The notes under the pieces: generated by a model | Seen by the model: the letters and a program-made list of their open reading frames with translations, nothing else | Told to the model about the DNA's origin: nothing | Databases searched by the model: none | Program-made: the position numbers and the translations under genes | Shown here: piece after piece, positions 232 through 36,300 of the stretch | How the letters are laid out: every line of letters begins with the position of its first letter | Position numbering within the stretch: position 1 is the stretch's first letter | NCBI RefSeq assembly: GCF_964188315.1 | Contig: NC_135661.1 | Coordinates: 52,576,001-52,640,000 of the forward strand | Length of the DNA: 64,000 bases | Source of the DNA: Podarcis muralis | Taxonomy: Eukaryota | Direction of reading: 5' to 3'

Positions 232-10422
<10,191 letters not shown>

Positions 10423-10795
10423 GGTCATAAAAGAATATGGTTTCATCCCCAAAATTCCATGCATCAAGTTACATGTTGTTTTTCCATGAATCAGTTCCCT
10501 CTTTTCTTTTTGGTTTCAGAAAACGGTGCCTTTTTAAGTGCTTTTTAAGTGGATAGTCTTAAGGTTTTGTCTAAGAGAAGTAGAAGTCTTGCCTTCATGG
10601 TCTTTACCAGTGAAGCCTAGTAAACAGGCTCATTTCTTTCTGCGTTTTTTCTCCATCTTTGATTAAAGGATCCTGTCACTCAGGATTCAACAGCTGAGTC
10701 CTGTACTCCATTTCGGATAGGTGATGTAAGGCCAAAGCAGAATTGCCAAGATCTGTTTCGTTGCTGGGTTGGTGTGGTGTTTTTAACAATACACC
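10423..10795 (-). other. MBTPS1: MBTPS1 5'UTR portion of exon 2 with multiple uORFs
   Basis: Acceptor TGTTTATTTTTGCAG| at 10796; ten AUGs between it and the main start. Confidence 0.65.
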
Positions 10796-12111
10796 CTGCA
10801 AAAATAAACATCCAATTACATAAATGAAATATTTTCTAATTTAATATTTTGACAAATCACAAGGTGGTAATAATATAGGCTGCAATTTCACACTAAAGTG
10901 AAAAACATATGCCTGGATTTTACATCAGGTGGCAGCTAACTTTATGTTCCTTTACACAAAAAATAAAATAAAAATCCAACATAGAAAAATAAGTATCAGA
11001 GGAAAGGATCCTAGCCTAACCTTCAATTTATTGTAGCAGCTATTTAAAATGCACACCAAAATTTTCCAATATATGAACAGTAAGTAATACAATATATAAA
11101 TTTTTTGAGACAACAGAATAAAACCTCATTTAAACTAAAACTGAACTGAGCACACTTTTAAACCTCTCAGAACCTACACTGGTTCTTTCTGTTTGGAGTT
11201 CTCTTGCAGCCAAAACATACAGAACTGTTCTATATATAGACTACATATGGGTAAACATCTTCTAGGAGAAAACAGATAATCTCTTGATCAGAGTAGGTTG
11301 TTAAACCAGACAAAATATTTCTCAGGTAGGGGCTCACATGACAAAATGGTTCTCCTTGCACACAAATTACATGCAGGCAATGTGTTTGTGCAGAGAACCA
11401 TTTTGTCAGGTGAGCTTCCAACTGCAATCTGAAATGGTTTACAACTTTAGTGAGAGCAAGACCACAGGGAGAGCAGGGAGATCTTGCAATTAAGAAGCTG
11501 AAGGTGGGGGGCGGGGAGAGATATATTGTGTGTTTTCCTTTCATTTCCTTGTCTCGTCTCCTCTTAAGGGCTGCTAAATGCATTGTTTTTGAGTATATCC
11601 GCAAGTTATCCTAAGACCCCAGCATGTTTTCCAACCACACTGAATTTCTGCTTCCCTTCTTTCTCACTCGTACACTGTCATAGTCACAATCACACACACA
11701 AAAGCACCATGCCTGCATGATGTTTATCTCTGAGGAGGAACATCCACTGCTTTCTACCTCATGCCCTTCAAGAAGGCTGCATAGGTGTGCTTAGCTGCTT
11801 ACCAGCATAGGACATTTACACGGGTTATTTTTTGGAGGGGGGTGATTTAGCATTTTAGAACATAACCTTAGCCCTCATACATCCCACAAAAGGGAAATTT
11901 GATCAAAGAAAACAAGTAAATGCTGATTGATAGAATTCCACTTCTCGCTGCTGTGGTAAACCTGTGCTGGACTGCACTACTTCAGAAATGCGAGTGGGAG
12001 GATACCTAGTATCATAGAACCCTCTGCTATGCCAAAAAAAAAAAAAAAATCTACACACTGAAAATTAGGTCAGAGTGAAGACCCCACTAAGAACACAATT
12101 TATTACATTTA

Positions 12112-12320
12112 TATGCCGTATTTCCTGAAAAGGAAGTGGAACAAACACATGGCTCCTCACCACCACCATTTTATCCTCATAATACCCGTGCAGCAGACAT
12201 CAGGGATAAGAGATGGCAACGGGCTCAACACTACCAAGTGAGTTTCGTGGCTAAGTGAGGGACTGAACCCAGGTCTCTCCATTCCTGGTCTCACACTTCA
12301 ACCACTAAACCACACTAGCT
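12112..12320 (-). mobile_element. tRNA-derived CORE/MIR-like SINE (old)
   Basis: TGAACCCAGGTCTCTCC...AACCACTAAACCACACTAGC, the reverse complement of a tRNA-like head. Confidence 0.55.
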
Positions 12321-13299
12321 GACAAGCTAGTTTTCTGTGTTGTCAGGTTTATTTATTGAATATGTTTTCATATTCCCCATCTACCAAAAGCTACCAGGTC
12401 AGGGGAGACACTGCCTTAAGGTACTTTTCCTTGATATGCTAGCTTTCTCTGTGTGGGGGAGAGGGAGAGAAGAGAAACAGGGCTCTTCCATGATCTCTGC
12501 TGAGAGGCTAATTGCCTTCCAAACTGTCACTTTGCAGCAGCCATTCCACTAGAGTAGATTATATAAACTATTTTCATTCTAGCTCACAGTTACAAGAACT
12601 ATAATAAAATATATTAATGTCTGATCATGCTTATTTCTTTCTTCCTCCCCATCCCTTTTCACTTGCGCACTGTGTCCCTTTTAAATTGCATGCCTGGGGG
12701 CAGAAACTATCTTAATATCTATTTCTGTATGCTGCTTTGGAAGCCTTTACTGACAAGAGTGGGCTACAAAAAAAGCTTTAAAACATGTAAGCTATAAATA
12801 GGGTAAAGTGTTCCACCTGGTTACACCCCCCCCCCTTGTGCAGTACAGCCCAGAGCAGACATTAGTGTTATTATTTACTTAAAGCATTTATACCCCAGCC
12901 TTCGGCCAAAAAGGCTCTTAGAAGTAGCTTACACAAATCAGTGCTAAAACAGACCCTGCGCTCAGGCTCATAATCTCAAAAAGGCATGACACACAAGGAA
13001 AAAGGAACAGGAGGGAGGAAGTGAAAGCAAACTGTAAGCTCTTAACATTTAGAGTTCTGATTAGAGTTCTATAGCTCTGTGCATGCAGATTCTGGCTGTC
13101 TAGGTGAGAAGCAACTCCCCACCATCCATCTTGCCCTTGATAAAGCGCTTATCTTTCTTTCCCCAGATGCACAGGATCTCCCACCACCATTACAGATCCA
13201 GGAGCAGAGGCGGTGACAATGTCCAGGCTGAGGAGGCAGGGCAACTGACTCACCCACGCCTCTGCAGTTATCACTGGGCAGAGGAAAGGGAAAGGACAG

Positions 13300-14560
13300 C
13301 AACAGCCTCCACCTGCCTTGGACTCTGGCTTTGGGCCCTTGTGCTGATTGCGCCAAGCGAATGCGCAGCGAGGACAGGTCCCCACCGGGTCACCTCGGCC
13401 CACTCACTCACTTTCTCTCAGCCTCACCTACCTCACAAGGTGGCTGTGAGGGTGAAGCGGGGGAGAACCATGTACGCCCCCTTGGAGGAAAGGTGGGATG
13501 TGAATATACGCAATCCTCTCCTGTCTGCTCTGTCTGCTCTCTGTGGGCTCAGACACCCCTCGAGACGTCGTCGCCAAACCCCACACGAGAGCCCCCGAGG
13601 TGGGCGCCTCTCTCGATGTCGGGGTGCCCCAGACCTTTGCGAATCAAGTCGTCGGACCGAAACGTGCCTTCACCCGATTTTGGGTGTGACAGGTCCGAAC
13701 GCTCTTTTTAAAAATAACAACAGCAGCAGCAGCAACACAATAATAATACTTTTCGGCTTCTGCGAATTCCCAGGCCGCTCAGCGCTAGGAAGTCAATGAG
13801 GACCAGGGAGCGGGATCCGCTAAGGAACTGCGCCCGGTGCTGCGCCCCAAAATCCACCCCGCCCCCCCCCCCTGAAACCAGCGGCAGTCCGGGCTCCGGC
13901 TGCTTCCTTCCCCCTGCTCCGTGAGAGGGAGGCCCGGGACGCGACCACAGAACGGCTGCTCCCCCTTCCTCCCCGTCCCTGCGGGCCCGAAGCCCCCCTC
14001 CAGCAGCTCCCTCGCCCGCTTCGACCCACCGGCCACCGAAGCTTCCGCAGGGCGCCCCCGGGCCGTAGCGGCCTCCCCTGGCAGCCGGGTCCGGAGCTCC
14101 GGGTGAGGCGAGCGCGGCTCCCGTCCCGCAGCCCCCCGCTAACCCCACACCAAGCAGCTGGCCTGGGCTGCGGAGGAGAAGCCGCCTTCCATGAACGCGA
14201 GCCTGGCGCACGCTGGGACTTGTAGTCTCCGCTGGCCCTCGCTTCGGAGGGCGGGCGGGCGGGATGGACTACATTTCCCAGGAGCCTCTGAGGCTCTAGC
14301 GAGCTCGTTTGCGGGTCCAACGGACGGAGGCCTCGTTGGTCCCGTCAAAGAAATCGAAACTGCCCTCTCGGAAGACGTAAACAGAAGTCCTTTGCTCTGA
14401 CGGCGCCACAAGAAATCTGCGCCTTAAGTGCATGGTGCGATAGGGAGCCTTGCAGGGAGACTCACGGAGCCCCTGCACTTTTAAATGCGCAAATGGCTAG
14501 GCATTATTTGGAAGTTCCGCAAAGCTAAGGGCACGTGCGATGTAATCCTGTGCCCACGTA
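13300..14560. promoter_or_regulatory. CpG island / MBTPS1 promoter and non-coding exon 1
   Basis: Very GC- and CpG-rich tract upstream of MBTPS1 exon 2; GGGCGG boxes at about 14248-14263; exact exon 1 limits not resolved. Confidence 0.85.
14212..14286. promoter_or_regulatory. Divergent pair of ZNF143(Staf)/THAP11-type ACTACAnnTCCCAG motifs flanking GC boxes
   Basis: Minus strand GACTACAAGTCCCAGC at 14212-14227; plus strand GACTACATTTCCCAGGAGCC at 14267-14286. Confidence 0.7.
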
Positions 14561-15595: not shown

Positions 15596-16009
15596 GACCA
15601 CGTGACCTCTTTCTGCTGCCAGTTCTTAATGGGGGTTCAGTCCCCAAGCATCCTATTCAACTTCTTTAGCATTCAGGGGACCCCAGCATTGCCCACTCAT
15701 GTCCAAATCAGAAAAAATCACTCAGTACTATGTAAAAATCAGGACCCCACAGACATCATACAAAAGAATATCAGCTTCCTAACAACAGGGTTCTTTTTTG
15801 CTGCCTGCGTAACATTCTTGATGGGCCCTGCAATGAGATAGAAGCAAGATGAAGTCTCTTTTAAAAGGTACATATCATCATCATCATCATTATCATTGAA
15901 GAAAATCCATCCAGTGAGAGTGGGGTTTTGTGGTAACTGGCTGCTAGATGTTATCTGTTCTCCAGCTGATATTTTTAATGCAGTTTTTTCCTCCCAAAAT
16001 GGCATTTTT

Positions 16010-16078
16010 TCAAAATGAGCCCAATCTGCTCATTCCCCTAACCCAGAGCCATTCTGGAATGATCTGTGCAAAAAAACC
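16010..16078 (-). CDS. HSDL1: HSDL1 last coding exon
   Basis: Acceptor TCTTCCAG|; [22 protein letters not shown]. Confidence 0.88.
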   Translation of the reverse strand, partial: GFFAQIIPEWLWVRGMSRLGSF

Positions 16079-19000
16079 CTGGAAGACAAGAGAGGAAACA
16101 CAGGTTAGAATTAGCACATAAACGTAAAGATTAGCACATAAAGATTAAAATATCAGCATGAAATAAAACCCAAGAAGATCTAACATGAAGAGTCTCCTTC
16201 AGACAGTGAATCATCCACATCTCCCATTCCTTCCTTTCAGTTCATAATATAGGAAGCTGCCTTCTATAGAGCCAGACCATTGGTCCATCTAGCTTAATAC
16301 TGTCAACACTGGCTGGCAGTGACTCTCTAGGATCTCTAGCAAGGGTCATTCCCAGCCTTGCCTGGAGACTGAACCTGGGACCTTCTTTGTGGAAATCACA
16401 TGCTCTGCCACTGAGCTATGACTCTTGCCCCCTCCAACTATTAATTCTCTTAAAAAAAAAATTTAAGGGATGGAAGTGCAGCAGAAGACACAAACATGCT
16501 GGTTTTATACGTTCTTTAAAAAGAACTTTGGGGAAGTTTACTGCCTGAGCACTTCATCTATAAAAAATGTTAAAACTTAATAAAGATAACAACATTTTGC
16601 ATGGGTTATTGCAGCTAACCTGGCATCCTTGTCTATCCCACCTCCTGTAGGCTACCATATGTATCGGGTGGTGCACAGACCCCTGGTCAAGCACCTGGCA
16701 TTACAATGATGACAGGTGACCCTTTTTGCCTGCACCAACAATCTGGTGATTAACACCACATAAGCCCCTTTCTACTTACCCTGTACCTGATGTTATATAG
16801 GACATCAAATGTGGGCCCAATGGGACCTGGGTGACCTAAGTAAGCCTGTGAGCCAGAGGTTCCTCACCTCTCCTATAAAGCTTTGGACTCTGAAGCACTG
16901 TCACATGTTCTGTGAATCTCCCCATCCTGTTGCACCATCCTTGCATTTGCCAGTACCTTCTGTGGCAAGATTGGTGGCCAAGCATGAGAGGGTCTTCTAT
17001 ATGTGGTGGCACCCCATAGGTGGAACTCATTGCCCTAAGATGTTCAGCTATCTTCCTCTTCGTTTGCATTGCAAACTGAAAACTTCCAAGCACCCATTGC
17101 TGGTTAACATATTGAGTACTGCCCTTTGTGTTTTTCTTCATTTGCTGCTCCTAGCTTGATGATTTGTGTTTTAATGGTGGGGCATGTGTTGTTTGTATGC
17201 TTGCTTTTAGATTTGCAAACTCTTTTGAACAACTTCCTTTAAGGAGGCGGGAAAATAGGGTGTAAATGCTTCTGAAGAAATAGAAATGTATGCAGTGCAG
17301 AACTAAGAGCAGTAATTGATGCACTAAGGCAGGTGTAGGGAACCTTTTGCCCTCCAGGTGTTTCTGAACTACGGTTCTCAACATTCCACACCATTGGCCA
17401 TGTTTGCTGGGGATGATGGGAGTTGCAGTTCAGCAATATCAGGAAGGTCAAAGGTTCTCCACCCCTGCACTAAGGGAAGAGATGCATTTTCCCACCCACA
17501 AGATACTACACAAAGTACCACAGTCTCTAGGTTCAGATAGCTTCATGCAAGAAAAATATGTTGGCCTGCAACACAGAGAATCATACACAGGTTGCAATGT
17601 AAGAACAGCACTTTGCTTTCTGTGCTTCTTTTATTTCTTTTGTTAAGAAAATGAGAATTAAACAAATAAAACTCTATAATAAAATAAACAAAACAGAACA
17701 CAGCAATAAAATTAAGCAATTAGGTTTTCGAGAGCATTAGCTGACAGTCAACACACACAGGAAGCTGCCTTATACTGAATCTAGCTCAGTATTGTCTGCA
17801 CTGACTGGAAGTTTCAGAGGCAGTCAGTCTCTCCCAGCTTTATGTGGAGAGGCTGGGATTAAATTTAGGGACCTTGTGAAGGCAAGGCAGATGTTCTACC
17901 ACTGAGCTACATCCCTTCCTCAAGATCACATTCCCCAAGATCATGTGTGAACATTTGCTTCGAAAGGCTCATTAAAACCAATCCAGGCTGCATGGTTCAG
18001 CCGCCAAGTTAAGAAAAGTTAAGAGAAAATGTAACACAGAAGCAGCTGAATTAATGATATTACCTGGATTGAATGGAGGGAGTATCCTGGAGTCCTTCTG
18101 GATAGTCCAAGGGTGGCAATAGCCTGGTGCGCGTATTCATCTGCAGAAGGCACAAGCAAGCTCTTTTTGGATAACGTGGGGCTGTATTTTGACATGTTGG
18201 TGCAGACGAAAGCTGGACATAAGCACTGAACAAAAATGCCTTGGGGAGCATACTCATAATAAAGCGATTGACTGAAATGGTCCAGGTAAGCCTGTCAAGG
18301 TTAAGAGCAGACAATTAAGATTCTCTGGATTTAACATGGGGAAAAACCGAACACATTCTCTTGACTTGCCCTTCTTATGCAGAGCTTAGACAAAATTTTA
18401 TAGACCCACTCCTATGTCAATTTAGCTTCCTATCCGGAGAAAACCAGGTTTTACACTTGCTGAATAATGTCACTAGAGCTATACCTTCTTTGGTGGCCAA
18501 ATTTCTTTTTTTAGCTTTTAAGCGTCACAAGACTATAATAGACTGTATTGATATGGGGCTATCTGTTTAGCCCATTTAGTGTTGGCTGAGTTCTAAAATT
18601 TTCCTGGATGTTTTAACTGTGTATTGACAAATGTACTTTTTTCTGACTGACGGTCGAATAAAAAGTTGTTGATGATGATGATAACATGGGGAAAAGGTGT
18701 GGAGAACAGACATTGGCAGCTTAGACAAGGCGCAACACAGATGGCTATGGAACAAAGCTTTACCAAATCAGCACCTATCCCCAACTCTGTATGTCTTGCT
18801 GACTGGCCAATTGCAACTTAATAATAACTGCTTTGGCACAGCTTTGCACAACCAAGTACCTTCCAGATGATTTGGACTTCAATTCCCATCAGCCCCAACA
18901 GAAACTCTGAAAGACACCAGGTTGGGGAACACTGCTATCGCACTTTAGGCTACAGTTATCTTGGGAGTCAGTCCCATTGAACTCAAGCAGGGCTTACCAT

Positions 19001-21188
19001 TAAGTAGACATGGACAGAATTGCTCTGTTGGTTCCTTTACAAAACGCACACCAGCCCTTTACCATTCACCTAACAGAGCAATCTTGTACATAGTTACTCT
19101 TTAATAAATTCCCTTAAATTCCCATGTAAGTGTGTATAGGGTTGCAGCCTCAATTTATAACGCTGCCTTCACTGGAGCAAAGTAGAACGCTTAAGCCAAT
19201 ACATTCCTGAAGCAGAAAAGCCACCATGGCTGTTCCTGAACCCTTTAAATTTTATCCTGCCTTCCATTCCTGTACATCTCTGAGCCGGAGTGGTAGGCAT
19301 CTAATTCAACCCTGCCAGAGCCTTTGCAGCAAGAATGAGGAATCCTTTCCAGGCCAAGGATAGTATATCCTCCATCCAGGCAAGCAAGAGGCATTATCAG
19401 ACTTCAAGGACATGTTCCAGCTGTTTTAAAACACTTGAAGGGGGTGCAAAGCAGGGCTACTGCGCGATGGTCTGAGAAGAGGCCTGAGGGCCAGAGAGAG
19501 AGGGGCCTAGAGAGATGCATACTTATCCTGGGACCTGAGGTTTCCCACTCCACCTTCAAAAACTTCCAGTTCTCAAAATCCTTATCCACAGAAACAGAAA
19601 AAACCATTTCCATGGAGAAAGGATGTGTAACTATCTCTTAGAAATAATGATTCTGATAAGACAGGGGGTAAGAAGCCTTTCTAGACTGGCAAGCCAGATT
19701 GTTATCTCCCTCACCCTTCGCAGGCCATGTTTGACAGGTGGGCAGATGCCACAGCAGCCTATTGCCTGCATGGGTCTTCAAGTGCCCTGCACTTTGAACA
19801 TGCAGTGATCAGCCAATTGCTGGATCTTCAGAAGCCCCGTTCACTGCACAGGGCAAAACAGAGCTTTGAAAGGGACTTTGCAGGCACCATGGTGAAGGGC
19901 GGGTGGCTATGGCTTGGCTGAAACGGCCTCATAGGCCAAACAAGGAGACCTTGTGGGCCTGATCAGGGCTGCAGGGCTGGAGGTTCCCCACCCATCATAA
20001 GAGAACACATATATGTTTATATTTTGAAACTCACCTTGGAGGCTGAATATGCCGTCATTCGTGGGGAGGGGTGGTAAGAGGACATAGAAGAAACGTTCAC
20101 GATAGCTCCTTTCTTTCTCTGAACCATTCCTGGCAACACCATGTGCACCATCATATTAGCTGCTCCAATATTGACGTTGATGAGATCCCAAATTTTATCC
20201 TCTGTCAAACTGGCAAAATAATCCGGGTGATCATAGAACACGCCAACGTTATTCACCAAAATGCCAGTCTCTTTGCCTAGCAGGGCCTTCTTGATGGCAG
20301 GGTACACCTGGCGGCCCCTGCTGAAATCTGCTACAACAACTTCCGTTTCGACCTTGTAGGAATCCTCAATATCTTTGGCAAGAGCTTCCAACATCTCCTT
20401 GTTCCGGCTAATTAAGACAACATTCACCCCGTGGCATGCCAACTCTTTAGCATAGGACTTCCCGATGCCTGAGGTACAACCTGGAGCAGATCGAGAGAGC
20501 AACGAAGATCATTTTTAGACTCTGAGACTAAATGCATTCACTTAGTCAACCGATAGTTGTAGAGCGTTTACAAAGGGCTTATGCATTTTTATGTCAGTAC
20601 AGTGGTGCCCCGCAAGACGAATGCCTCGCAAGACGAAAAACTCTCTAGACGAAAGGGTTTTTCCATTTTTTGAGTCGTTCCGCAAGACGAATTTCCCTAT
20701 GGGCTTGCTTCGCAAGACGAAACGTCTTGCGAGTTCTTGCAAGTTTGTTTCCTCTTTCTTAAAGCCGCTAAGCCGCTAATAGCCGTGCTTTGCAAGACGA
20801 AAAAACCGCAAGACGAAGAGACTCGCGGAACGGATTAATTTCGTCTTGCGAGGCACCACTGTATGGGGTCTTCCTAAAAAAAATCTCAACAACTTTGCAG
20901 GTGTCAGGAATTTTAATTTTTGAAATAAGGCAACCCCAGAGAATCTGTGTGCTCCAACTGTCTCTTACCTGTTACAGCAGCCCACCTTCCATACAGTTTG
21001 ACGAAATCAGGCCTGCTGACCAGCCGAGGAATGAAATACAACCTGATCAGGCTGTATGTGTTGCTTGCAACAGTGAGGGATGTCTTCATTATGTAGAAGG
21101 CTCCAATGAAAGCCAATGTCTCTATGACACAACTGCAGGCCTGCCCAATCTCTCTGAGCAAGAAGGAAAAGCTGTCCACAGCAGCCAT
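16010..21188 (-). CDS. HSDL1: Hydroxysteroid dehydrogenase-like protein 1 (SDR family), 320 aa; join(21188-20969,20480-20035,18291-18064,16078-16010)
   Basis: MAAVDSF...[19 protein letters not shown]...ISRN...NNVG...[26 protein letters not shown]...PEWLWVRG; exon sizes 220/446/228/69; GT-AG introns; lies between MBTPS1 and DNAAF1 as in mammals. Confidence 0.95.
16248..16424 (-). mobile_element. Squam3-like SINE
   Basis: ATAGGAAGCTGCCTT...CAGACCATTGGTCCATCTAGC...CCACTGAGCTAT. Confidence 0.75.
17759..17915 (-). mobile_element. Squam3-like SINE (internally deleted)
   Basis: AGGAAGCTGCCTTATACTGA...TCTACCACTGAGCTAC. Confidence 0.7.
18064..18291 (-). CDS. HSDL1: HSDL1 coding exon
   Basis: [26 protein letters not shown]...[17 protein letters not shown]. 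Confidence 0.95.
20035..20480 (-). CDS. HSDL1: HSDL1 coding exon (Rossmann fold and active site)
   Basis: [15 protein letters not shown]...TAYSASK. Confidence 0.96.
20600..20861. mobile_element. pogo/Tigger-like MITE with internal CGCAAGACGA repeats
   Basis: TIR CAGTGGTGCCCCGCAAGACGAA / TTCGTCTTGCGAGGCACCACTG, TA TSD; sister copy at 58016. Confidence 0.88.
20969..21188 (-). CDS. HSDL1: HSDL1 first coding exon
   Basis: [20 protein letters not shown]...YGRWAAVT; acceptor TTCTCTTCTAG| at 21203, donor G|GTAAG. Confidence 0.95.
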
Positions 21189-22062
21189 GGTAAAACAGAT
21201 GTCTAGAAGAGAAGAAGCAAAAGATGTTTGTAAGGAAGGAAGTATGTATTTTTTTCCATTGCTTCATTTAGCCAAATCATTGACTTCATATTCCAATAGG
21301 TCATAAGATGCTAAAAATAAAAATGACCATTTCATTTTGTTTCAGGAAAACCCAAGAGCATCTGCCACATATATCTATTATTCTTTGATTAACATAACAT
21401 ATCCCAATAGAACTCAAAGTGGTTGATAACATTCAAAGCACAATGAAACAATAATAAACAACAACAATAATGATAAACATATCAAAAAACAACAGCATGG
21501 TAAATAATTAAAACAACCAAGTCAAAATGCAATGCAAATATAAATCTAAAGTTTAAAGGAGGATGAGTATTGGAGGGAAGTCTCATGGGTGTATTACTAC
21601 TATTCTTATTTTTTGCTTCTCTTTCTTTTCTTTTTTTGTACTGTTTTTATTTTTTGGGATATTATATGTATTTTTTGTCAGTGTGAATAAATACTGTTTG
21701 TTTGTCTGAAAAACAACAACAACAACCAAGTCAGCTTAAAATACCAGGGAAACCCCACCAAACTCACACAGTCAACCATCCTGAACAAAACTGCCTTCAT
21801 CTGTCTTGCAGCACTGCAGAATGGGATGGCTTTACAAAGCTTTGCTTTCAGAAAATGCCGTTCCAAAATCAAGTATGGAGACTCTGGCTCATGTGTTGCT
21901 ATTTTACTCTTTTCAATGAGACTTCCACAAAGAGCTTATTACTCCATTGCCATTATCATCTCACTGATTTTTATTAGGCCAAATTTTATGCAGCCTTCCT
22001 CCTTACAGTCTCAGACAATCTGGCAACAGCAAATTCGGCAAACACAGCCAATACTAATAGTG

Positions 22063-23318: not shown

Positions 23319-24949
23319 ACAAATGTTGTAAAGCCATTTCAGTCTATCCTCTGTGCACTTGTCCCTGACCCTTCTGCACCCTTCTTCCATTTTTCTGCAG
23401 CCGAAATCATAACCTAACTTACTTAGGAGTAACCACCACTGACTTCACTTTTACTTAATTCTGAGCAGACAGAATTAAGCAGATTAAGCCTAAACTTAAC
23501 CCATTTTTCATAGAACTTGAAATGCCAGACAATTTTCGTGTATGTGGACTTGCATCATGATCGGATGCATATTTACTCAGAAGTAAGCCTCACTAATGGA
23601 GTTTTGCTTCCATGTAACTGAGGGTACAATTTGCACCCTTGAATGAAACAATAAGAAATGTAAAGAGAGAGGTCTCTACTGTTCCAGAAATGATCTGTCA
23701 ACTTTAAATTCCTATTAATCCAAATATCAGTTCTGCTCTTTAGAGCAGAGAACAAAATAACATTATTAAAGTATGATATTGTTGATTCCCAACCCTCCAA
23801 CCCCTTCTGACCTTTGAGCTTTTGCTTCTGAGTAATACTATAAATGTTTTACAAAAAAACCCCAACCATTGTCTTTAAAAAGCAAGTAAATCAAATCAAT
23901 GGCGCCAAACCCGTTTTGCCATATTTCATTTACCTGTTCTTTTATGCAACCTGCGATGTTTCTGCGCTGCTGCCTTACTTAATGACCTGACTTTAGTTCA
24001 GTTGGAAGGAAACCTTCCCGTTCTCAGTTCCACCCGACCCTGCGGCTATGAGGAAAATCTGGGGAGCGGATTTTCAAAATCGCTTGGCAAGTAGGCTGTT
24101 CACAGACCTGTCAAGTCGTGATCCGGTTTCCACGTTTTTGTATTGCCAGCTTTGGAAGATCAAAAGCCCTTCGTCCGCCCGCACAAGGGAAGGGTCCTGA
24201 ACGCGCTGTAAAAACGAGCAGCGCAGAAAATGCTGTGTTACTTCTGTTCCTTGCATGGATACCTCGCTTGTACATAAACTTGGTAAAAGCCATTATCTGT
24301 CCTAAAGTAAATTTTGTCCAGGTGAATCTAAGTTTATTATATTAATGTCAACATAAATCCCCTTAAAGGACTCAGAGGCATCACGAAAAGACCACAGAAA
24401 GTTAAAGTTTAGCATCATAACTACACTTCTGGGTTCCAGGCGAATGGCTGAGCGGCTTCCATTTGCGTGACAATATGATTCCTCCAGGAGCTAAAACTGC
24501 AAACAAAGCCAGTCGAAATGCTACAAAGAGGGGGCTGTGTTCTTCCGGGCGCCCCTCACAGCACACGCACAAGTTCAATCTCCCTTTTAAAGTTGTAAGC
24601 GACGGGCTACATTCAAATTAATTTGTATAGTATTAAAACCTCAGCCTAAAAGCGTCAGAGGTTGGATTCGATGGCCTCTGTGGCCCCCTCCAACTTTTAT
24701 GATTCCTTCTAGAGTAGCCTTATTGGAGCTACACTACATTCCTTCACTAGCAGTGACTTTGGGTTTGGGGGTCTAGAAGCTTGTGGTCTCTGATAAAAAT
24801 AATCATTAATAATCATTAAAATAATCAGAGGTCATTCGATCTAACTCCTTGCCTATATTAATGTCTGCTTCTTCTTTCGTGACTATAGGACCCGGGTCTT
24901 TTCCCGTGAACTGAAATCGGAAAGCTTCACTATAGAGACAACGGGATGC

Positions 24950-25340
24950 TGCTCCAAGAGGACCATTCGGTGGGAGGAGGGGGCGGGGCTGGAAGTGAGG
25001 GCCAAGTGCGTCACCCAGCTCTTCTCCCGCGCGTGCGCAGAGCCGTGCCTTGGGCGGCCCGTCGCCATGGCAACGGGGGGAAGCCGTTGGAAAGGAGCCG
25101 TTGAAGAGAGAAGCCGGCGTGGTTGGGTGAAGAAGGGGCTCGGGCGGCCAGGCTTCCCCCGGTAGCATCTCCTTAGTGAGAGGAAGGATGGCGAAGGCAC
25201 CCTGAGTGGGCAGCGAAGAAGAGAAAGAGAGGAGGGTATTAAATGGGGACAGCAAGCTGGGGGGCGGGGGGGGGCGTGTGTTTTAAACAAAGAGGTGCTG
25301 GGGCTAAGCAGACCTGTCTGGGAGCCCCTGCTCAGTTACG
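24950..25340. promoter_or_regulatory. CpG island; bidirectional HSDL1/DNAAF1 promoter
   Basis: GC/CpG-rich tract between the head-to-head genes; GC boxes; NRF1-like GCGCGTGCGCA at about 25029-25039. Confidence 0.85.
25061..25074. promoter_or_regulatory. RFX X-box
   Basis: GTCGCCATGGCAAC, one mismatch from the palindrome GTTGCCATGGCAAC, in the promoter of a motile-cilia gene. Confidence 0.8.
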
Positions 25341-25447
25341 AGACGTCCGGCTGCAGCTATTGCTCCCGAGCAGGGATTGTGCTCTGCTTATGCCCAGAGA
25401 AGTATTCTGTGTTACTTTAAGTGGGCTGCTGCATAGCGCAAATCACG

Positions 25448-25585
25448 CAGTGGTTCTCAACCTGTGGGTCCCCAGATGTTGTTGGACTACAACTCCCATC
25501 ATCCCTGAGCTCTGGCCTTGCTAGCTAGGGGTGATGGGAGTTGTAGTTCAACAACATCTGGGGACCCACAGGTTGAGAAAAGCTG
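25448..25585. mobile_element. Palindromic hAT-like MITE
   Basis: CAGTGGTTCTCAACCTGTGGGTCCCCAGATGTTGTTGGACTACAACTCCCATCA ... TGATGGGAGTTGTAGTTCAACAACATCTGGGGACCCACAGGTTGAGAA; near-perfect hairpin. Confidence 0.8.
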
Positions 25586-30300: not shown

Positions 30301-33300
30301 TTCCCAATCTGAATTGCTCCTCCCCTCCCACAGCTGTTAACCCTGCAGGGGCAGGGTGTGAGGGGATACTGGTTCAGTGTTGCTTTCAATGTAACTAACT
30401 TTCAGTGGAGTATATTAGCTCGATTGGGCCCTGGATCTCCTTACCTGCAGCAAAAATGAAAACAGGCTCTGCTTCTTTTTTAAGGTCTTCTTCAAATAAC
30501 AGTTGGCTAGTTGGTTAAGCCAGTATTTGTGTACCTATGTTTAAGTAATTTTATGTGTGCAATGCAGATATCACCCGATAGATGGACTTATTTGTTCATG
30601 CATATTCCAGTTTGTTGGTATCATTATTACATTGTGGTGCCCAGAACTTGACAATACTCAAGCCCTGAAGAAAGCCAAGAGAAACATGAATGGAGATAGA
30701 GGTTGTGGAGGGCAGGCAAAGGAAAGCATTCTACAGTATTTTCTTGTCCATGGGTCCCCACTTTAAAACCATATCCCCACTCCTTTTATTATAACAACTT
30801 CATTCTGAAATATGGTCCATGTTGCCATTGTGTTTACTGCATTTTTCTTCCTGCAGGATTTGATCGTCTGGAGAACCTGGAAGAATATACAGGATTGAAG
30901 TGCTTATGGCTGGAATGCAATGGCTTGACTAAGATCGAGAACCTGGATGCACAGACAGATTTGCGTTGCCTTTATCTGCAGCTGAATTTAATAAATAAAA
31001 TTGAGAATCTTGAACCCTTGGAAAAGCTGGACTCTCTCAACCTCAGCAACAATTATGTCAAGACAATTGAAAACCTCTGTAAGAATTCTAACTTCACTGA
31101 AATAAGATCCATAACCTGAACACAGTGTTATTTAGTGGTGTTACTGTCATACATGTAGGGGCACCAATGTGTTAAAACACAGTGCAAAGCATTTCCGCAG
31201 CAATTTCTGGTGGCTTCTGTGGAGGCAAATTTTGTTGTTGGCATCTGTCTGTCTTGAGAGACAATGGTGTCCGCCAATGGGGGTGAAGTCAAATCACTGT
31301 GTTAGCAGCACTGAAGTGACCTCCCTAGGATGTAAGCCTGGATGGTGTCTATGGAGGTCCAGGGCTGCCCAGACAACAAGACTCTTCCCCCCCCCCATCA
31401 GCCTCACTGATGTGCTTCAAAGGAAAGAAGCAATATGCACAGAGTCAAAAGGAGCAAGGAGGAACATTTTCAGCACTGAAAGTCTTCAGTGCAAACTTTT
31501 TCTTTAGATTCCTAACAGTGGAGCGAGCCAGATTGGGAACCAGTTGGGGGTGGGGCGTGATGGTGAGTGTTGAGGCATTTTAACCCTTAGCTCCACACAG
31601 GGTCCTAATCTCAAACGAGCCCCTGTGCCTGTAATTTGTGAAGGGAATGACACAAGGATGGTAGCACAAGGACACAAAATAAAACTTGCACATACTGCGG
31701 GCCTGAAAATGAACTAATGTCTATAGTCATATGCCCAAGAGAAGCAATGCTGCAGCCTCTTCATGAAGTGTGTTTTATTGATCAACTGCAGAGTAAGATT
31801 ACTTCCCCCTACATTTAATCTAAATTCCCCTTCTTGAAATAGACCCCTTGCCCCTTAAACTGTTGTCATCAGATGTACCTCTATACTTACATTTAACTAA
31901 CAAGCATTCCTAATTACAATTCTGTGGCCAGTTAACCTGGACCCCTATACTCTGGGACTTAACTGGGCTTTGAGGTTCTAGTTTGGTATGACTGAGGACT
32001 TTCCAATGTTTCAGAGGACAATATGTGGGTGTGTGCATTTTAATCTTGTACAGTATATCCACAAGCAGAACTTGCTGAGAATCTTGCCCCTAAAATGGCA
32101 ACCTTGGTTGGGCTGTAATTGGTCTTGGTAGCATAATCTTGTTGCCTTTGTTACGATTCCTTAATTTATTTAGCAGTCCCATTCATTTTACTTACTCTAA
32201 CGGTATCCTTACTTTTCAACAGCTTGTTTGAAAGTTCTGCACACTCTACAGATTGCTCACAATCAGCTGCAAACAGTTGAAGACATACAGCACTTACAGC
32301 AATGCCCAAGTATCAGTGTCCTTGACCTCTCTCACAATAAGCTAGATGATCCAAACATTTTAGATGTCCTGGAGACCATGCCTGATTTGGTAAGCAAAGA
32401 ATAACTCCAAGATTGCTTTATCTGATCCACCATTTCTCAGGCACAGAATGATTCTGTTCCACTGATCTTACTGTGCTGTGGAAGGATATATGCTGTATCC
32501 AGTGCTTCAGGGACATTAACATGCCTTAATAAAATTTAGAGTCAGGTGGTAGGAGAGAAGTTACTGTAATAAATTTGCATAATCAGGAAACAAAATCCTT
32601 GATGGGTTATGTCAATATGAGTATGCTTGATTCAGACCTCCCTTATGCAAGAAAAACAGGGGCCACAAGGAACAGGTAGCAGGTTTAGCTCCTACCCCAG
32701 TAATGTCTCTGAGTGCACCCTTTTCCTTTCTTCTGCAGGAGTGAATGACAAGAAGGTGCAGTTATGCTTGCAGTGTAGCTATGGGGGTTAAGTGAACAAA
32801 AGTTTACTCAAAGCTGATCCTATGAAAATGATTTAAATAGATATATATTCAACTATTTTTAGTTCCAGGATGGCTTCACATATTGTACAAAAACAATTTC
32901 TACTGTTGTATTTTAATTCTGCTTTTTTTTTCTTCTTGCAGCGTGTATTGAACTTAATGGGAAATGAGGTGATAAAGAAAATTCCTTATTACAGGAGGAC
33001 ACTTACCATCCGATTGAAACATCTGACGTATTTGGATGACAGGCCAGTGTTTCCAAAGGACAGGTAAAACAGGAAAGGAGTGAAGAGATGACCAGTCTAA
33101 AATATTATTAGTAGCCTAATCAATTCTGACTATGTTGTCTGAAAAATGGATATATTAACAACTAACTTCATGGGGCTGTTCTAATACACACACACCAGAA
33201 TGGCCTGTAAGATTCTGATCCTGATCCTAAACAAATTGCTTCAGCTCACAAATGTGACAACCCCCAAAGCAATCACTTCAGGAGAGCAAGCTTGTGACTG

Positions 33301-36300
33301 GGGCAACAGAGGTAGCATAATTTAAAGACAGTCTCATTCATTCATTCACTTTGTTTGTATGCCACTTTTTCACACAAGAGTCATGCTCAAAGTGGCTTAC
33401 AACAAAGAAACGGATGCATTTTAAACAAACACTACAAAAACAATTTCTTAATAACATAGCATAACATAGCAAAACAGAAATATAAGAACACAGAGAAAAG
33501 CACATTTCAATACACAAATATAGCAAGATTACCTAAACAACATGCAGCATCCAATAGCAAAAACAGCAAGGGAACTTCACAGTTTCATCTTAGTCCTAGA
33601 AACACCCCTCCCTGATGTTACTCCCCAATACTGACCAATCCAAATTGTAAAATGTATGGAGGAGGTCCTGCTGGTGGTACTGCCAATGGGTATGATTCAG
33701 AGTGGTGGTGGCAGTGACCCAGGACCAGGCTTTCTTTGTTGTGACACCATGATTATAGAACACTCTCCCTGTTGAAGAGTGTGTTGTTGTTATTTAGACT
33801 GAAACTGAGGACCATTTTTGGTCACTGTACATGAATGGAAGGTAGGTGTCAGGAGGCAGGTAGTTGCTATGTTTTACATGGTTTGAAATATAATTTTGGT
33901 AATTTTAATTTTGTAATAATTATATTTATGATGTTGTATAACCATCCCAGGCTCCCTCCAGAGGAAGGGTGGAATAGAAATCCAATAAATAATAATAATT
34001 TTACAGTCCCACATAGCAGCACTGTTCACACATTTTTATTACTATTTTAGTTAGCCACCCCACAACCAAAGTTATCTAAAATCCATATAATGGCATCAAG
34101 CATAACAATGCCAATTAATTAAGCACAAACTAGGGAGAGCAAATTGCCCTTTCCTGCAAGTGCAGCTGGATGATAGGCCCAAACAGCAGCACTGCACACT
34201 TTCAGGCTGTGGAAACTGCCAGACATAGGAGTCAGTTCATTATGTAGAAATTAATTAATGCAACATCATTCCATGTGTCTGATGGTAGTCATCTTTATTC
34301 TTTCCAGAGCCTGTGCAGAAGCCTGGGCTAAGGGTGGCCGTGAAGCTGAACAAAGTGAAAGAGAAACATGGGACACAAAAGAAAGGAAGAAGATCCAAGA
34401 CAGTATTGATGCTCTTGCCGCAATCCGGCAAAAAGCTGAAGAGAAGAAAAGGCAGTGGGAAAGAGAAGAAAGAGATAGAACATCACCTGACAGTGAAGAA
34501 GGTTTGTGTTTAAACTTTTGAGCAGAACAGAGCCTGGGACTTGCCGATCAGGTCGGCGGTTCGGATCCCCGCGACGGGGTGAGCTCCTGTTGCTTGGTCC
34601 CTGCTCCTGCCAACCTAGCAGTTCGAAAGCACGTCAAAGTGCAAGTAGATAAATAGGTACCGCTCCAGCGGGAAGGTAAACGGCGTTTCCGTGCACTGCT
34701 CTGGTTCGCCTGAAGCGGCTTAGTCATGCTGGCCACATGACCCGGAAGCTGTATGCCGGCTCCCTCGGCCAATAAAGCGAGATGAGCGCTGCAACCCCAG
34801 AGTGGGTCACGACTGGACCTAATGGTCAGGGGTCCCTTTACCTTTACTGTGCCACCATAGCCCTTTTGAGCATCCAGCTTCACACACTTCCAATTCGGGG
34901 GGGGGGGTAGGGTTAGGGGCAGAAGCACACTTGCTGAACTTGTCCCCTCTTTATGCCCCAGTTACTTACTACCTTCCATGCAGTCAAGGATGAACTTCCC
35001 AGAAGAGGAAAACCTTCATATCCTTTTGGAAGAAAACCAATAAATGGACTAAAGTGACATTGCTCAGCAAAAACCCAAGGATTAGTATGACTTGCATGCA
35101 CGCTTATTCTCTTTTTGTTTTGGGGCTGTTCTAGAGGAAATGCCATCTTCAAGCAGCAGCACTGAGACAGACAGTACAGGAAAGGACTCGTGTACTTTGG
35201 AAGTGTTGGAAACAAAGGAAAAGATTGATAAATTTGTGAAGGACAGCATGGATGCCCACAAGGAGGCTGTGGCTGAAGGAGCAATCTTAGGAGATCAGTC
35301 AGGAAGACCAGAGAGTGGTCATAGAGGTCATCATGAACAAGAAGTACAAGAATCGAGATTTGACATGCATTCAGATTTTACATGCACTGCAGAAGGTATG
35401 TAAGCATCTATTTAGTTGCTAGTGCATCTTTTATCCTGGAAATCAAGGTGGCCTTTATGGGGACTCCCAGACACTCTCCCATCCAGATACTGACCAACCA
35501 CAAACCTACTTAGCTTCAGCAAGGTGGCTGCATCATGTGTCCTCAGACCATGCACTAGCAATACTAGTTGAAACACCATCCATATTTTGGTTGTAGAGTT
35601 GGCTGGGGAAAAGGTTCATCCATTTCATTTCACCAGGGCTCTGAAGGTGGGGTTTGTTTAGTTAGGAAAGCTTATCCACATATATAGGTAACATTCTATA
35701 GGGAGGCTGCAAAAATGCTTGCATATTGCAGCATTCCACAAGAGGGACAATATTTTGTGAGCAACTTTCTACATAGTTTTGTCCAATTGCCTAGCAGATC
35801 TTCACGTCAGTTCTGAAGAGTCCCAGGAATGTGCAGCACTCATGTAGAAACTGCCTCTGCAATTAAGATTTTGTGCAAAGTCAGTCATATAGGTTGCAGT
35901 GGGGCACCAGGGCCCTGCGGCGATGTGACATCTTTCCGCAGGGCCTGCAAGACAGAGCTGTTCCGCCTGGCCTTTGGCTTGGACTCAGTCTGACCCCTTA
36001 TATGGGATTTGGTATATAAATTTTCCCTTGTCTTTTTTGCTGGCCCATGTAGGACCAGCATGGATAGCTGGCTCAGGTGAATATCTGATGTTTCCTCTCT
36101 TTATGGTCTTGATTTATGGGCTACTACTAGAATGAGGCTGCATTTTAACCTGTATTTTAAGCTGTATTTTAATTAACTTTTTTTCTATTACATTTTATTG
36201 TAATTTATATTTGGTGTTAGCTGCCCTGAGCCCAGCCCTGGCCAGGGAGGGCTGGGTATAAATGAAAATTTATTACAGTGGTACCTCGGGTTAAGTACTT

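Follow-up and report, generated by a model that had tools for sequence, protein, structure and literature searches.

Tyr218 of HSDL1 in the lizard Podarcis muralis is an ordinary ancestral residue

HSDL1 and its described relatives

Hydroxysteroid dehydrogenase-like protein 1 (HSDL1) belongs to the same SDR subfamily as the SDR12C paralogs HSD17B12, the very-long-chain 3-oxoacyl-CoA reductase, and HSD17B3, both of which are ER enzymes with known substrates. We know of no substrate for HSDL1 itself, and the human and zebrafish proteins reportedly showed no activity on the substrates tried by Meier et al. in 2009. Among classical SDRs, the NADP(H)-preferring members are marked by a basic residue, and the absence of an acidic one, after the second β-strand.

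The HSDL1 gene studied here lies in a 64,000-nucleotide stretch of the P. muralis genome (the window). The encoded protein shares with HSD17B12 and HSD17B3 the S-x12-Y-x3-K motif, a P-x-P loop, the basic residue after β-strand 2 (the two paralogs being NADPH users) and an N-terminal membrane anchor. However, these paralogs form a separate clade, occupy different loci and are 41–51% identical to exon 2 of the lizard gene. Residues 70–254 likewise align with solved classical SDRs such as 4bmv, 6zdz and the FabG family (E = 4e-26, ~35% identical), and N177, S205, Y218 and K222 are all present and in register with the corresponding Asn, Ser, Tyr and Lys, although these bacterial proteins are soluble and lack both the N-terminal anchor and the C-terminal extension. 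No HSDL1, HSD17B12 or HSD17B3 entry appeared among the best 60 matches in the sequence search of solved structures.

Placental HSDL1 falls in one clade with the lizard protein, also adjoins MBTPS1, and agrees with it in length, glycine motif, NNVG, Asn177, Ser205 and Lys222, at an overall identity of ~61–62%. It differs in having Phe218 (78 sequences) together with Thr202, where the lizard has Tyr218 and Asn202, and in counting 330 residues against 320 in the lizard, whose C-terminal tail is shorter and divergent. The wider placental signature (Thr202, Gly206, Lys210 and Gln214-Leu215-Ala216) is absent from the lizard protein, as seen from its Asn202. Conversely, chicken HSDL1 (NP_001005837.2) and other sauropsids, at ~60% identity, resemble the lizard in Tyr218, Asn202, the full tetrad and the cofactor motifs; birds read CCQPTPMLTIY-GASK in the stretch where the lacertid sequence differs by its loop SSYHPSPR. 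The curated chicken record carries the name 'hydroxysteroid dehydrogenase-like protein 1', without 'inactive'.

The HSDL1 locus and codon 218

The gene is the ordinary HSDL1 (SDR12C3) of P. muralis, encoded on the minus strand between MBTPS1 and a leucine-rich-repeat (LRR) gene (Table 1). Its four exon translations show 0 differences from RefSeq XP_028595378.2, named 'inactive HSDL1 isoform X1 [Podarcis muralis]', and 0 differences from the database protein P0174, which was used as a stand-in for full-length comparisons. Exons 1 and 2 together comprise 666 nt, or 222 codons, so that the tyrosine is residue 218 and Lys222 is the final codon of exon 2. Each of the three introns is backed by RNA reads, the 20480|20969 joint by 47 reads in run X23 as well as by a contig of run X19, and the gene is transcribed and spliced as modelled. 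The exon boundaries, at residues 74, 222/223 and 298/299, are the same in the Lacerta, Zootoca, Rhineura and Hemicordylus loci. A hydrophobic N-terminal segment (about residues 14–38, the hydropathy maximum of the protein) is encoded in exon 1, the Rossmann core, together with every cofactor and catalytic motif, in exon 2 (Pfam adh_short, 7e-27), and the substrate-binding/C-terminal part of the SDR fold in exon 3. The interspersed repeat in intron 1, for which Rfam and tRNA scans gave no match, has a second copy at 58007–58249 (78% identical) and is no part of HSDL1 function.

Table 1. Features of the HSDL1 region, in window coordinates
Feature	Position	Strand	Description
HSDL1 coding exon 1	21188-20969	-	220 nt; ATG at 21188; donor gt 20968-20967; M1-T73 and first base of Gly74
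High-copy interspersed repeat	20590-20965	.	within HSDL1 intron 1; word depth 4-6 x 10^5 in DNA contig runs
HSDL1 coding exon 2	20480-20035	-	446 nt; Gly74 (bases 2-3) to Lys222; acceptor ag 20482-20481, donor gt 20034-20033
G74-C-T-S-G-I-G80	20461-20480	-	part of the TGxxxGxG dinucleotide-binding motif; T73 encoded in the preceding exon
Arg99 (ISRN)	20404-20406	-	basic residue after β-strand 2; Arg in 88% of non-eutherian HSDL1
Asn177 (INVN)	20170-20172	-	fourth residue of the N-S-Y-K tetrad; invariant in 161 + 51 sequences
S205-x12-Y218-x3-K222	20035-20088	-	active-site stretch; includes lacertid-specific loop SSYHPSPR; consensus elsewhere SCC[QK]PTP
HSDL1 codon 218	20049-20047	-	TAT = Tyr; catalytic position of the SDR Y-x3-K motif
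HSDL1 coding exon 3	18291-18064	-	228 nt; A223-Q298; RNA joints 18291|20035 (83 reads) and 16078|18064 (41 reads)
HSDL1 last coding exon	16078-16010	-	G299-F320 and stop codon 16012-16010; tblastn with P0092 100% over 23 residues; RNA joint
MBTPS1 (site-1 protease) 5' coding exons	8107-10467	-	ORFs; Pfam MBTP1_N 7.9e-37 at 9571-9840
Leucine-rich-repeat gene exons (DNAAF1-like)	30850-34521	+	ORFs; Pfam LRR_4 8.9e-8; upstream of HSDL1, opposite strand

The first-pass annotation had taken the gene for the HSDL1 ortholog rather than an HSD17B3/HSD17B12 paralog, and both phylogeny and neighbourhood agree. In a 64-row maximum-likelihood (ML) tree, 58 vertebrate HSDL1 sequences form one clade (SH-aLRT 99) apart from the HSD17B12-type rows, and P0174, standing in for the window protein to which it is identical, falls within Lacertidae (100) and Squamata (100). 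MBTPS1, identified by its MBTP1_N domain, adjoins HSDL1 downstream on the same strand, with the LRR exons upstream on the opposite one. We take this to be the human arrangement as well, DNAAF1 there occupying the place of the LRR gene, and the name DNAAF1 for the lizard LRR gene presumes this synteny. The 5' region of MBTPS1 is GC-rich at ~13000–14400 (GC 0.50 at 12001–14000).

On the minus strand, positions 20052–20035 read gca TAT tca gcc tcc aag, followed by the splice donor gtgagt, which corresponds to A217-Y218-S-A-S-K222 and confirms the TAT codon first noticed at this site. The codon was unchanged in two DNA and two RNA runs from different studies: at 20047–20049 the contigs of DNA runs X2 and X12 and of RNA run X19 showed no difference, and neither did the raw RNA-seq reads of run X23 (~109 reads). 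Moreover, Tyr218 is found in five other lacertid records from independent assemblies, and Lacerta, Zootoca, Rhineura and Hemicordylus share the TAT codon. The lizard protein consequently does not have the Phe in place of the catalytic Tyr that characterizes a Phe218-type pseudoenzyme. The sole change seen in reads near the codon, 20050 T>C, is silent and leaves Ala217 as it is.

The other motifs listed in the first pass are equally present and intact alongside S-x12-Y-x3-K: TGCTSGIG at residues 73–80, ISRN at 97–100, NNVG at 150–153 and INVN at 174–177. Arg99 within ISRN is the basic residue after β-strand 2 and predicts a preference for NADP(H). In addition, 69 of the 71 most conserved alignment columns are kept in P. 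muralis HSDL1.

Residue 218 across vertebrates

The distribution of residue 218 was assessed in 319 HSDL1 sequences; the word searches behind this sample listed no HSDL1 from teleosts, zebrafish included. The combination N202/Y218 was present in 212 of these, that is in all sampled non-placentals except Amia and Lissotriton, while T202/F218 was present in 78, every one placental. Tyr218 with N202 thus occurs in all sampled squamates, tuatara, turtles, crocodilians, birds, frogs, caecilians, lungfish and coelacanth, and likewise in the sampled sturgeons, bichir, sharks, monotremes and marsupials (ten marsupial genera). Within this teleost-free sample Phe218 was limited to placentals, where it accompanies N202T, plus one newt, Lissotriton; the other states observed were Ile in Peromyscus and Ser in Amia. 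Tyr218 is present again in some placentals, namely lagomorphs, shrews, phyllostomid bats, canids, pinnipeds and mustelids. Dog, otter and rabbit, for instance, have Tyr, and panda, meerkat and human Phe. Among aligned sequences, Asn202 was found in all 161 non-eutherians and Thr202 in all 51 eutherians, and conservation across the 161 non-eutherian, non-lacertid HSDL1 reached 100% for S205 and 99% each for Y218 and K222. HSD17B12-type paralogs also have Tyr at the catalytic position.

Tyr218 is almost certainly the ancestral state of jawed vertebrates, one that purifying selection has maintained in nearly all lineages outside placentals, with Phe218 and N202T having arisen on the placental stem. 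The earlier proposal of a retained ancestral residue is borne out by the presence of Tyr in nearly every non-placental lineage sampled, from sharks to marsupials. The suggestion that chicken HSDL1 may also carry Tyr was correct, as it is for every sauropsid sampled, but the suggestion of a sauropsid-wide state proved too narrow, given that Tyr is gnathostome-wide outside placentals. The premise of a Phe shared by many vertebrates is at odds with the sampled sequences, in which it was confined to placentals and the one newt, teleosts such as zebrafish lying outside the sample. Full-text searches of the literature, whose scope did not extend to Meier et al. 2009, returned no statement on which species have Phe or Tyr at HSDL1 218.

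Catalysis, lacertid divergence and the 'inactive' label

The complete classical-SDR apparatus of the lizard protein (TGxxxGxG, Arg99, NNVG and Asn177-Ser205-Tyr218-Lys222) makes it, therefore, most likely an NADP(H)-dependent oxidoreductase. In the proposed mechanism Tyr218 would act as proton donor/acceptor, Lys222 would lower the pKa of Tyr218 and bind the nicotinamide ribose, Ser205 would hold the carbonyl or hydroxyl of the substrate, and Asn177 would support the proton relay. Human HSDL1 has been mapped to the mitochondrial outer membrane (preprint 10.64898/2026.04.03.716438), and by analogy the N-terminal hydrophobic segment may anchor the lizard protein there. Taken as a whole, this main reading, an ordinary ortholog with an ancestral Tyr218 that is most likely an NADP(H)-dependent oxidoreductase, is in our view highly probable. 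As to whether the protein is truly catalytically active, its motifs incline us slightly towards predicting that it is.

Several observations speak against catalysis. The Tyr at residue 218 has been replaced several times without gene loss, by Phe in placentals and Lissotriton, Ile in Peromyscus and Ser in Amia. Conservation is very strong among placental HSDL1 proteins with Phe, those of primates, bats, carnivores, xenarthrans and pangolin sharing one cluster at 90% identity. HSDL1 therefore clearly has a function without need of Tyr, and this Tyr-independent function could be its main one everywhere. In the lacertid substrate loop, Ser-Tyr takes the place of the otherwise conserved Cys208-Cys209, and R230 is Gln. 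The null activity that Meier et al. are said to have obtained with human and zebrafish HSDL1 also weighs against a catalytic reading, the zebrafish residue 218 being outside our sample. The lizard protein might, then, keep its Tyr and be no catalyst. Its Tyr-independent job could be, for instance, that of a scaffold or sensor that binds nucleotide at the mitochondrial outer membrane, with Tyr, Ser, Lys and Asn retained for the shape they give to the NADP(H) pocket and not for substrate turnover. The retention of S205, K222, N177 and the glycine motif by placentals despite Phe is in line with such a role. However, Tyr218 is conserved in the 161 non-eutherian sequences, which range from sharks to birds, as tightly as Ser205, Lys222 and Asn177. 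Furthermore, where placentals have departed from Phe, the change was to Tyr in four clades or more and hardly ever to another residue, a pattern difficult to reconcile with an irrelevant hydroxyl. On balance we find a non-catalytic lizard protein rather unlikely.

Returning to the catalytic reading, the sequence comparisons tentatively suggest that HSDL1 may work as an NADP(H) oxidoreductase in most vertebrates, the lizard included. Tyr would have been lost once on the placental stem, together with N202T, and regained in four or more clades of placentals (lagomorphs, shrews, phyllostomid bats and caniform carnivores), catalysis being a switchable accessory atop a Tyr-independent core function. 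We put this forward as possible rather than probable.

A different question is raised by the divergence of the lacertid protein. The 228-nt exon (18291–18064), noted in the first pass as ~60% identical to human, measured 59% against placental HSDL1, and the divergence proposed around the substrate-binding region was also recovered. With Hemicordylus as the outgroup locus, and rates taken without a control gene, exon 3 had a dN of 0.150 on the lacertid branch versus 0.011 in Rhineura and was the fastest-evolving part in lacertids. Exon 3 and both termini evolve faster than the catalytic exon 2, which keeps a normal rate, with the same dN on the lacertid branch as on that of Rhineura. The lacertid stem is long in the ML tree (0.24 versus 0.086 for Rhineura), a Tajima relative-rate test gave 50 versus 21 unique changes (p = 6e-4), and lacertids carry C208S, C209Y, R230Q and S245C at otherwise conserved sites. 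These features would suit a lacertid-specific change of function, in which positive selection after the amphisbaenian split remodelled exon 3 and the 206–216 loop towards a different substrate. However, dS is also 1.7x higher on the lacertid branch. The dN/dS of that branch, a rough estimate from small counts (NG86, three-taxon distances), is ~0.4 overall and ~0.45 in exon 3, and by the same rough method omega exceeds 1 solely in the short, unconstrained C-terminal tail. Relaxed constraint fits the rates equally well, and we regard a new lacertid substrate as improbable. Lacertid HSDL1 is under purifying selection, with a dN/dS of 0.20–0.35 among lacertids and versus Rhineura.

The proposal of a natural F218Y revertant, in which the lizard lineage went through Phe and then back to Tyr, had as its sole support the premise of Phe as widespread in vertebrates; since all outgroup lineages in the sample, sharks through marsupials, have Tyr, as do the HSD17B12-type paralogs, the lizard never passed through Phe, and the distribution of residue 218 refutes the reversion, to which we give practically no credence. 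An assembly error at codon 218 or an HSD17B3/HSD17B12-like paralog, just as implausible, is refuted by the reads, the tree and the MBTPS1 synteny.

Lizard Tyr218 is hence a known, ordinary ancestral residue in an already annotated ortholog and no lizard novelty. The HSDL1 'pseudoenzyme' is peculiar to placentals rather than general among vertebrates, yet through automatic naming the birds, reptiles, amphibians, fishes, monotremes and marsupials with the full catalytic tetrad have come to be labelled 'inactive' as well. If catalysis is indeed switchable, the 'inactive' label on hundreds of Tyr-bearing orthologs would be an annotation artefact. The hunt for a substrate is better begun with an HSDL1 that bears Tyr by nature, such as that of chicken, lizard, opossum, dog or rabbit, than with engineered human F218Y, and placental clades differing solely at residue 218 offer ready-made natural controls.

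Codon 218 and the identity of the locus

On the minus strand, 20052-20035 reads gca TAT tca gcc tcc aag (Ala-Tyr-Ser-Ala-Ser-Lys), and the splice donor gtgagt follows directly. Since the first two coding exons of HSDL1 together supply 666 nt (220 + 446), i.e. 222 codons, the tyrosine is residue 218, and the catalytic Tyr218 proposed for the wall lizard in the first-pass annotation is confirmed by the codon, the exon arithmetic and sequencing reads. Exon 2 matched adh_short in Pfam at 7e-27.

Coding exons, RNA intron joints and motifs of P. muralis HSDL1
Feature	Position	Strand	Details
Coding exon 1	21188-20969	minus	220 nt; ATG at 21188; ends in phase 1
Coding exon 2	20480-20035	minus	446 nt; acceptor ag at 20482-20481; last codon Lys222
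Coding exon 3	18291-18064	minus	228 nt
Last coding exon	16078-16013	minus	stop codon 16012-16010
RNA intron joints	16078/18064, 18291/20035, 20480/20969	minus	each CT..AC, i.e. GT..AG on the minus strand
TGCTSGIG	residues 73-80		dinucleotide-binding motif
ISRN	residues 97-100		
NNVG	residues 150-153		
INVN	residues 174-177		
Active-site motif	S205-x12-Y218-x3-K222		

The stretch 15900-21300 was compared with four public P. muralis runs from four studies, at depths of about 10 for the two DNA contig sets, 18 for the RNA contig set and about 109 reads for the raw RNA-seq. No difference from TAT at 20047-20049 was found in any of the four (two DNA, two RNA), which speaks against an assembly error concealing Phe; the sole change adjoining the codon, carried by the individual of the RNA-seq run, was 20050 T>C, synonymous in the third base of Ala217. 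The three introns were bridged exactly at the predicted borders by RNA reads and one RNA contig. The window carries three nonsynonymous minority alleles, Phe62 (21003), Ser164 (20210) and Val176 (20175); Leu, Asn and Ile occupy these residues in three or four of the runs and in other lacertids, and at 21003 the majority allele was seen in all four, for the RNA contig run X19 in part of its depth.

A polypyrimidine tract with ag (about 21204-21203; window 21189-21204) lies immediately 5′ of the ATG, and one RNA contig runs 74 nt past 21204, unmatched to the stretch compared. In combination, these observations suggest that a non-coding exon lies further upstream, perhaps close to the GC-rich region at about 24000-25500. 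Intron 1 holds a very high-copy interspersed repeat (20590-20965; word depth 4-6 x 10^5 in the DNA contig runs), abundant on both strands in the RNA runs and with a second copy, 78% identical, at 58007-58249; searches of the intron 1 copy gave no tRNA match and no Rfam match.

The gene is HSDL1, ordinary and already annotated. Its RefSeq protein, XP_028595378.2, showed 0 differences from the four exon translations when compared exon by exon, and this identical database protein, not a joined gene model, was used for full-length comparisons. The 5′ exons of MBTPS1 lie downstream on the same strand (Pfam MBTP1_N, 7.9e-37) and an LRR gene, DNAAF1-like in appearance, lies upstream on the opposite strand; human HSDL1 is likewise flanked by MBTPS1 and DNAAF1. 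A GC-rich stretch (GC 0.50) at 12000-14500 separates the 3′ end of HSDL1 from the first coding exons of MBTPS1 and probably represents the promoter and 5′ exon of the latter gene. A maximum-likelihood tree built from 64 proteins united the 58 HSDL1 sequences of vertebrates in a single clade (SH-aLRT 99), separate from reductases of the HSD17B12 type, with the window's protein nested in Lacertidae (100) and Squamata (100). This placement, with MBTPS1 adjoining, argues against an HSD17B3/HSD17B12-like paralog. Rooting within the HSDL1 clade was distorted (birds at the base), and ancestral states were taken on the accepted species tree instead.

Residue 218 across vertebrates

Three word searches and three cluster look-ups yielded 319 HSDL1 sequences with a readable site, no teleosts among them. 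Tyr218 was combined with Asn202 in 212 of these: in fishes (five sharks, bichir, sturgeons, paddlefish, coelacanth, lungfish), amphibians (two caecilians, frogs, Pleurodeles), non-squamate sauropsids (tuatara, turtles, gharial, crocodile and more than 100 birds including chicken), squamates (geckos, Rhineura, five lacertids, Hemicordylus, Elgaria, Varanus, Pogona) and mammals (both monotremes, ten marsupial genera). Phe218 with Thr202 was found in 78 of the 319, every one placental. Outside the placentals, Tyr218 was replaced by Ser in both Amia species (database proteins P0240, P0325) and by Phe in the newt Lissotriton helveticus (P0258), while Pleurodeles keeps Tyr.

On the accepted tree, over the groups sampled, the gnathostome, tetrapod, amniote, sauropsid and squamate ancestors reconstruct unambiguously as Tyr218. 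The lizard protein had been read either as a natural F218Y revertant or as retaining the ancestral state; as Tyr stands at all of these ancestors, reversion is ruled out, and the residue was never lost on the way to the lizard. The suspected Tyr of chicken was read in the sampled sequences. A sauropsid-wide distribution held among the sampled sauropsids but failed as a limit, as the pattern reaches sharks, amphibians, monotremes and marsupials.

Constraint, lacertid rate and predicted chemistry

Among 161 non-eutherian, non-lacertid HSDL1 sequences, 71 of 320 columns were at least 97% conserved, those of Tyr218, Ser205, Lys222 and Asn177 included, and P. muralis retains 69 of the 71 (exceptions R230Q and S245C). 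In the lacertid substrate loop (window 20062-20073, residues 208-211), Cys208-Cys209, 91-92% conserved elsewhere, has become Ser-Tyr; salamander HSDL1 likewise has Tyr at 209.

Exon-by-exon Nei-Gojobori estimates from the HSDL1 loci of Lacerta, Zootoca, Rhineura and Hemicordylus, rough values from small counts with no control gene, gave dN/dS of 0.20-0.34 among lacertids and 0.31-0.35 between lacertids and Rhineura. Lacertid HSDL1 was faster than its sister lineage (50 vs 21 unique changes, Tajima's test, p = 6e-4), with three-taxon estimates of dS 0.24, dN 0.098 and omega 0.40 for the lacertid branch and dS 0.146, dN 0.038 and omega 0.26 for Rhineura. The catalytic exon 2 was without lacertid excess (dN 0.049 vs 0.045 in Rhineura); the excess lay in exon 3 (0.150 vs 0.011) and at the two ends of the protein, in the N-terminal exon and a short tail at the C-terminus. 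Exon 3 is the exon for which the first-pass annotation had described a diverged substrate-binding part, and that divergence is borne out. The change of substrate proposed to explain it fares no better than relaxed constraint and a generally faster lineage, which explain the divergence equally well: omega does not reach 1 in any part with meaningful counts, and the lacertid branch has a raised dS as well.

In alignments, the Asn, Ser, Tyr and Lys of the lizard protein are in register with solved SDRs, and with the full classical NADP(H)-dependent equipment in its sequence, ordinary SDR chemistry is the most likely mechanism. Hydride would pass between NADP(H) and a substrate carbonyl or hydroxyl, with Tyr218 as acid/base, its pKa lowered by Lys222 and the nicotinamide ribose, Ser205 holding the substrate oxygen in place and Asn177 backing the proton relay. 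A hydrophobic segment at residues 14-38 would anchor the protein in a membrane; human HSDL1 has been localised to the mitochondrial outer membrane in a 2026 preprint (10.64898/2026.04.03.716438). We lean slightly towards real catalysis by lizard HSDL1. To our knowledge HSDL1 has no known substrate, and the zebrafish assay published by Meier et al. in 2009 was reportedly negative. The repeated, tolerated loss of Tyr and the very tight conservation of Phe-bearing placental HSDL1 show that the protein has some function independent of Tyr.

Placental Phe218 and the inactive label

Natural F218Y revertants, if any exist, would belong to the placentals. Thr202 was present in 51 of 51 aligned eutherian sequences, and Asn202 in 161 of 161 non-eutherians and in lacertids (GAIVN-x-SS). 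The placental stem also altered positions 206, 210 and 214-216, making Y218F one of several changes that arose in a burst within the active-site loop. Phe218 occurs in afrotherians, one xenarthran, primates, rodents, cetartiodactyls, one pangolin, most bats, Ailuropoda (panda) and the feliform Suricata (meerkat); two Peromyscus species have Ile218 (P0291, P0295, P0223). Tyr218 on a Thr202 background was found in lagomorphs (Lepus, Oryctolagus, Ochotona), shrews (Suncus, two Sorex), phyllostomid bats (Phyllostomus, Sturnira), canids (Canis, Vulpes), pinnipeds (Phoca/Halichoerus, Zalophus) and mustelids (Lontra, Neovison, Mustela, Enhydra), in database proteins P0218, P0222, P0209, P0224, P0229, P0252, P0298, P0307, P0308, P0313, P0316, P0317 and P0319. 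Because Phe is widespread in placental orders, a Phe root with several Tyr returns needs fewer changes (about 6 vs at least 8 for the reverse, by hand count on the accepted tree), and these clades probably represent natural Phe-to-Tyr reversals.

Automatic RefSeq names carry "inactive" on HSDL1 proteins with Tyr from birds, reptiles, amphibians, fishes, monotremes and marsupials; for chicken, the curated record NP_001005837.2 is named without it. The label seems to have spread from the name of the human gene. As reconstructed, the Tyr218 of the lizard is ancestral, not reverted, in a pattern far wider than the sauropsids. The side result, a Phe near-exclusively placental, coupled to N202T and followed by clade-level returns to Tyr, with "inactive" mis-propagated to Tyr-bearing orthologs, may merit a separate study.
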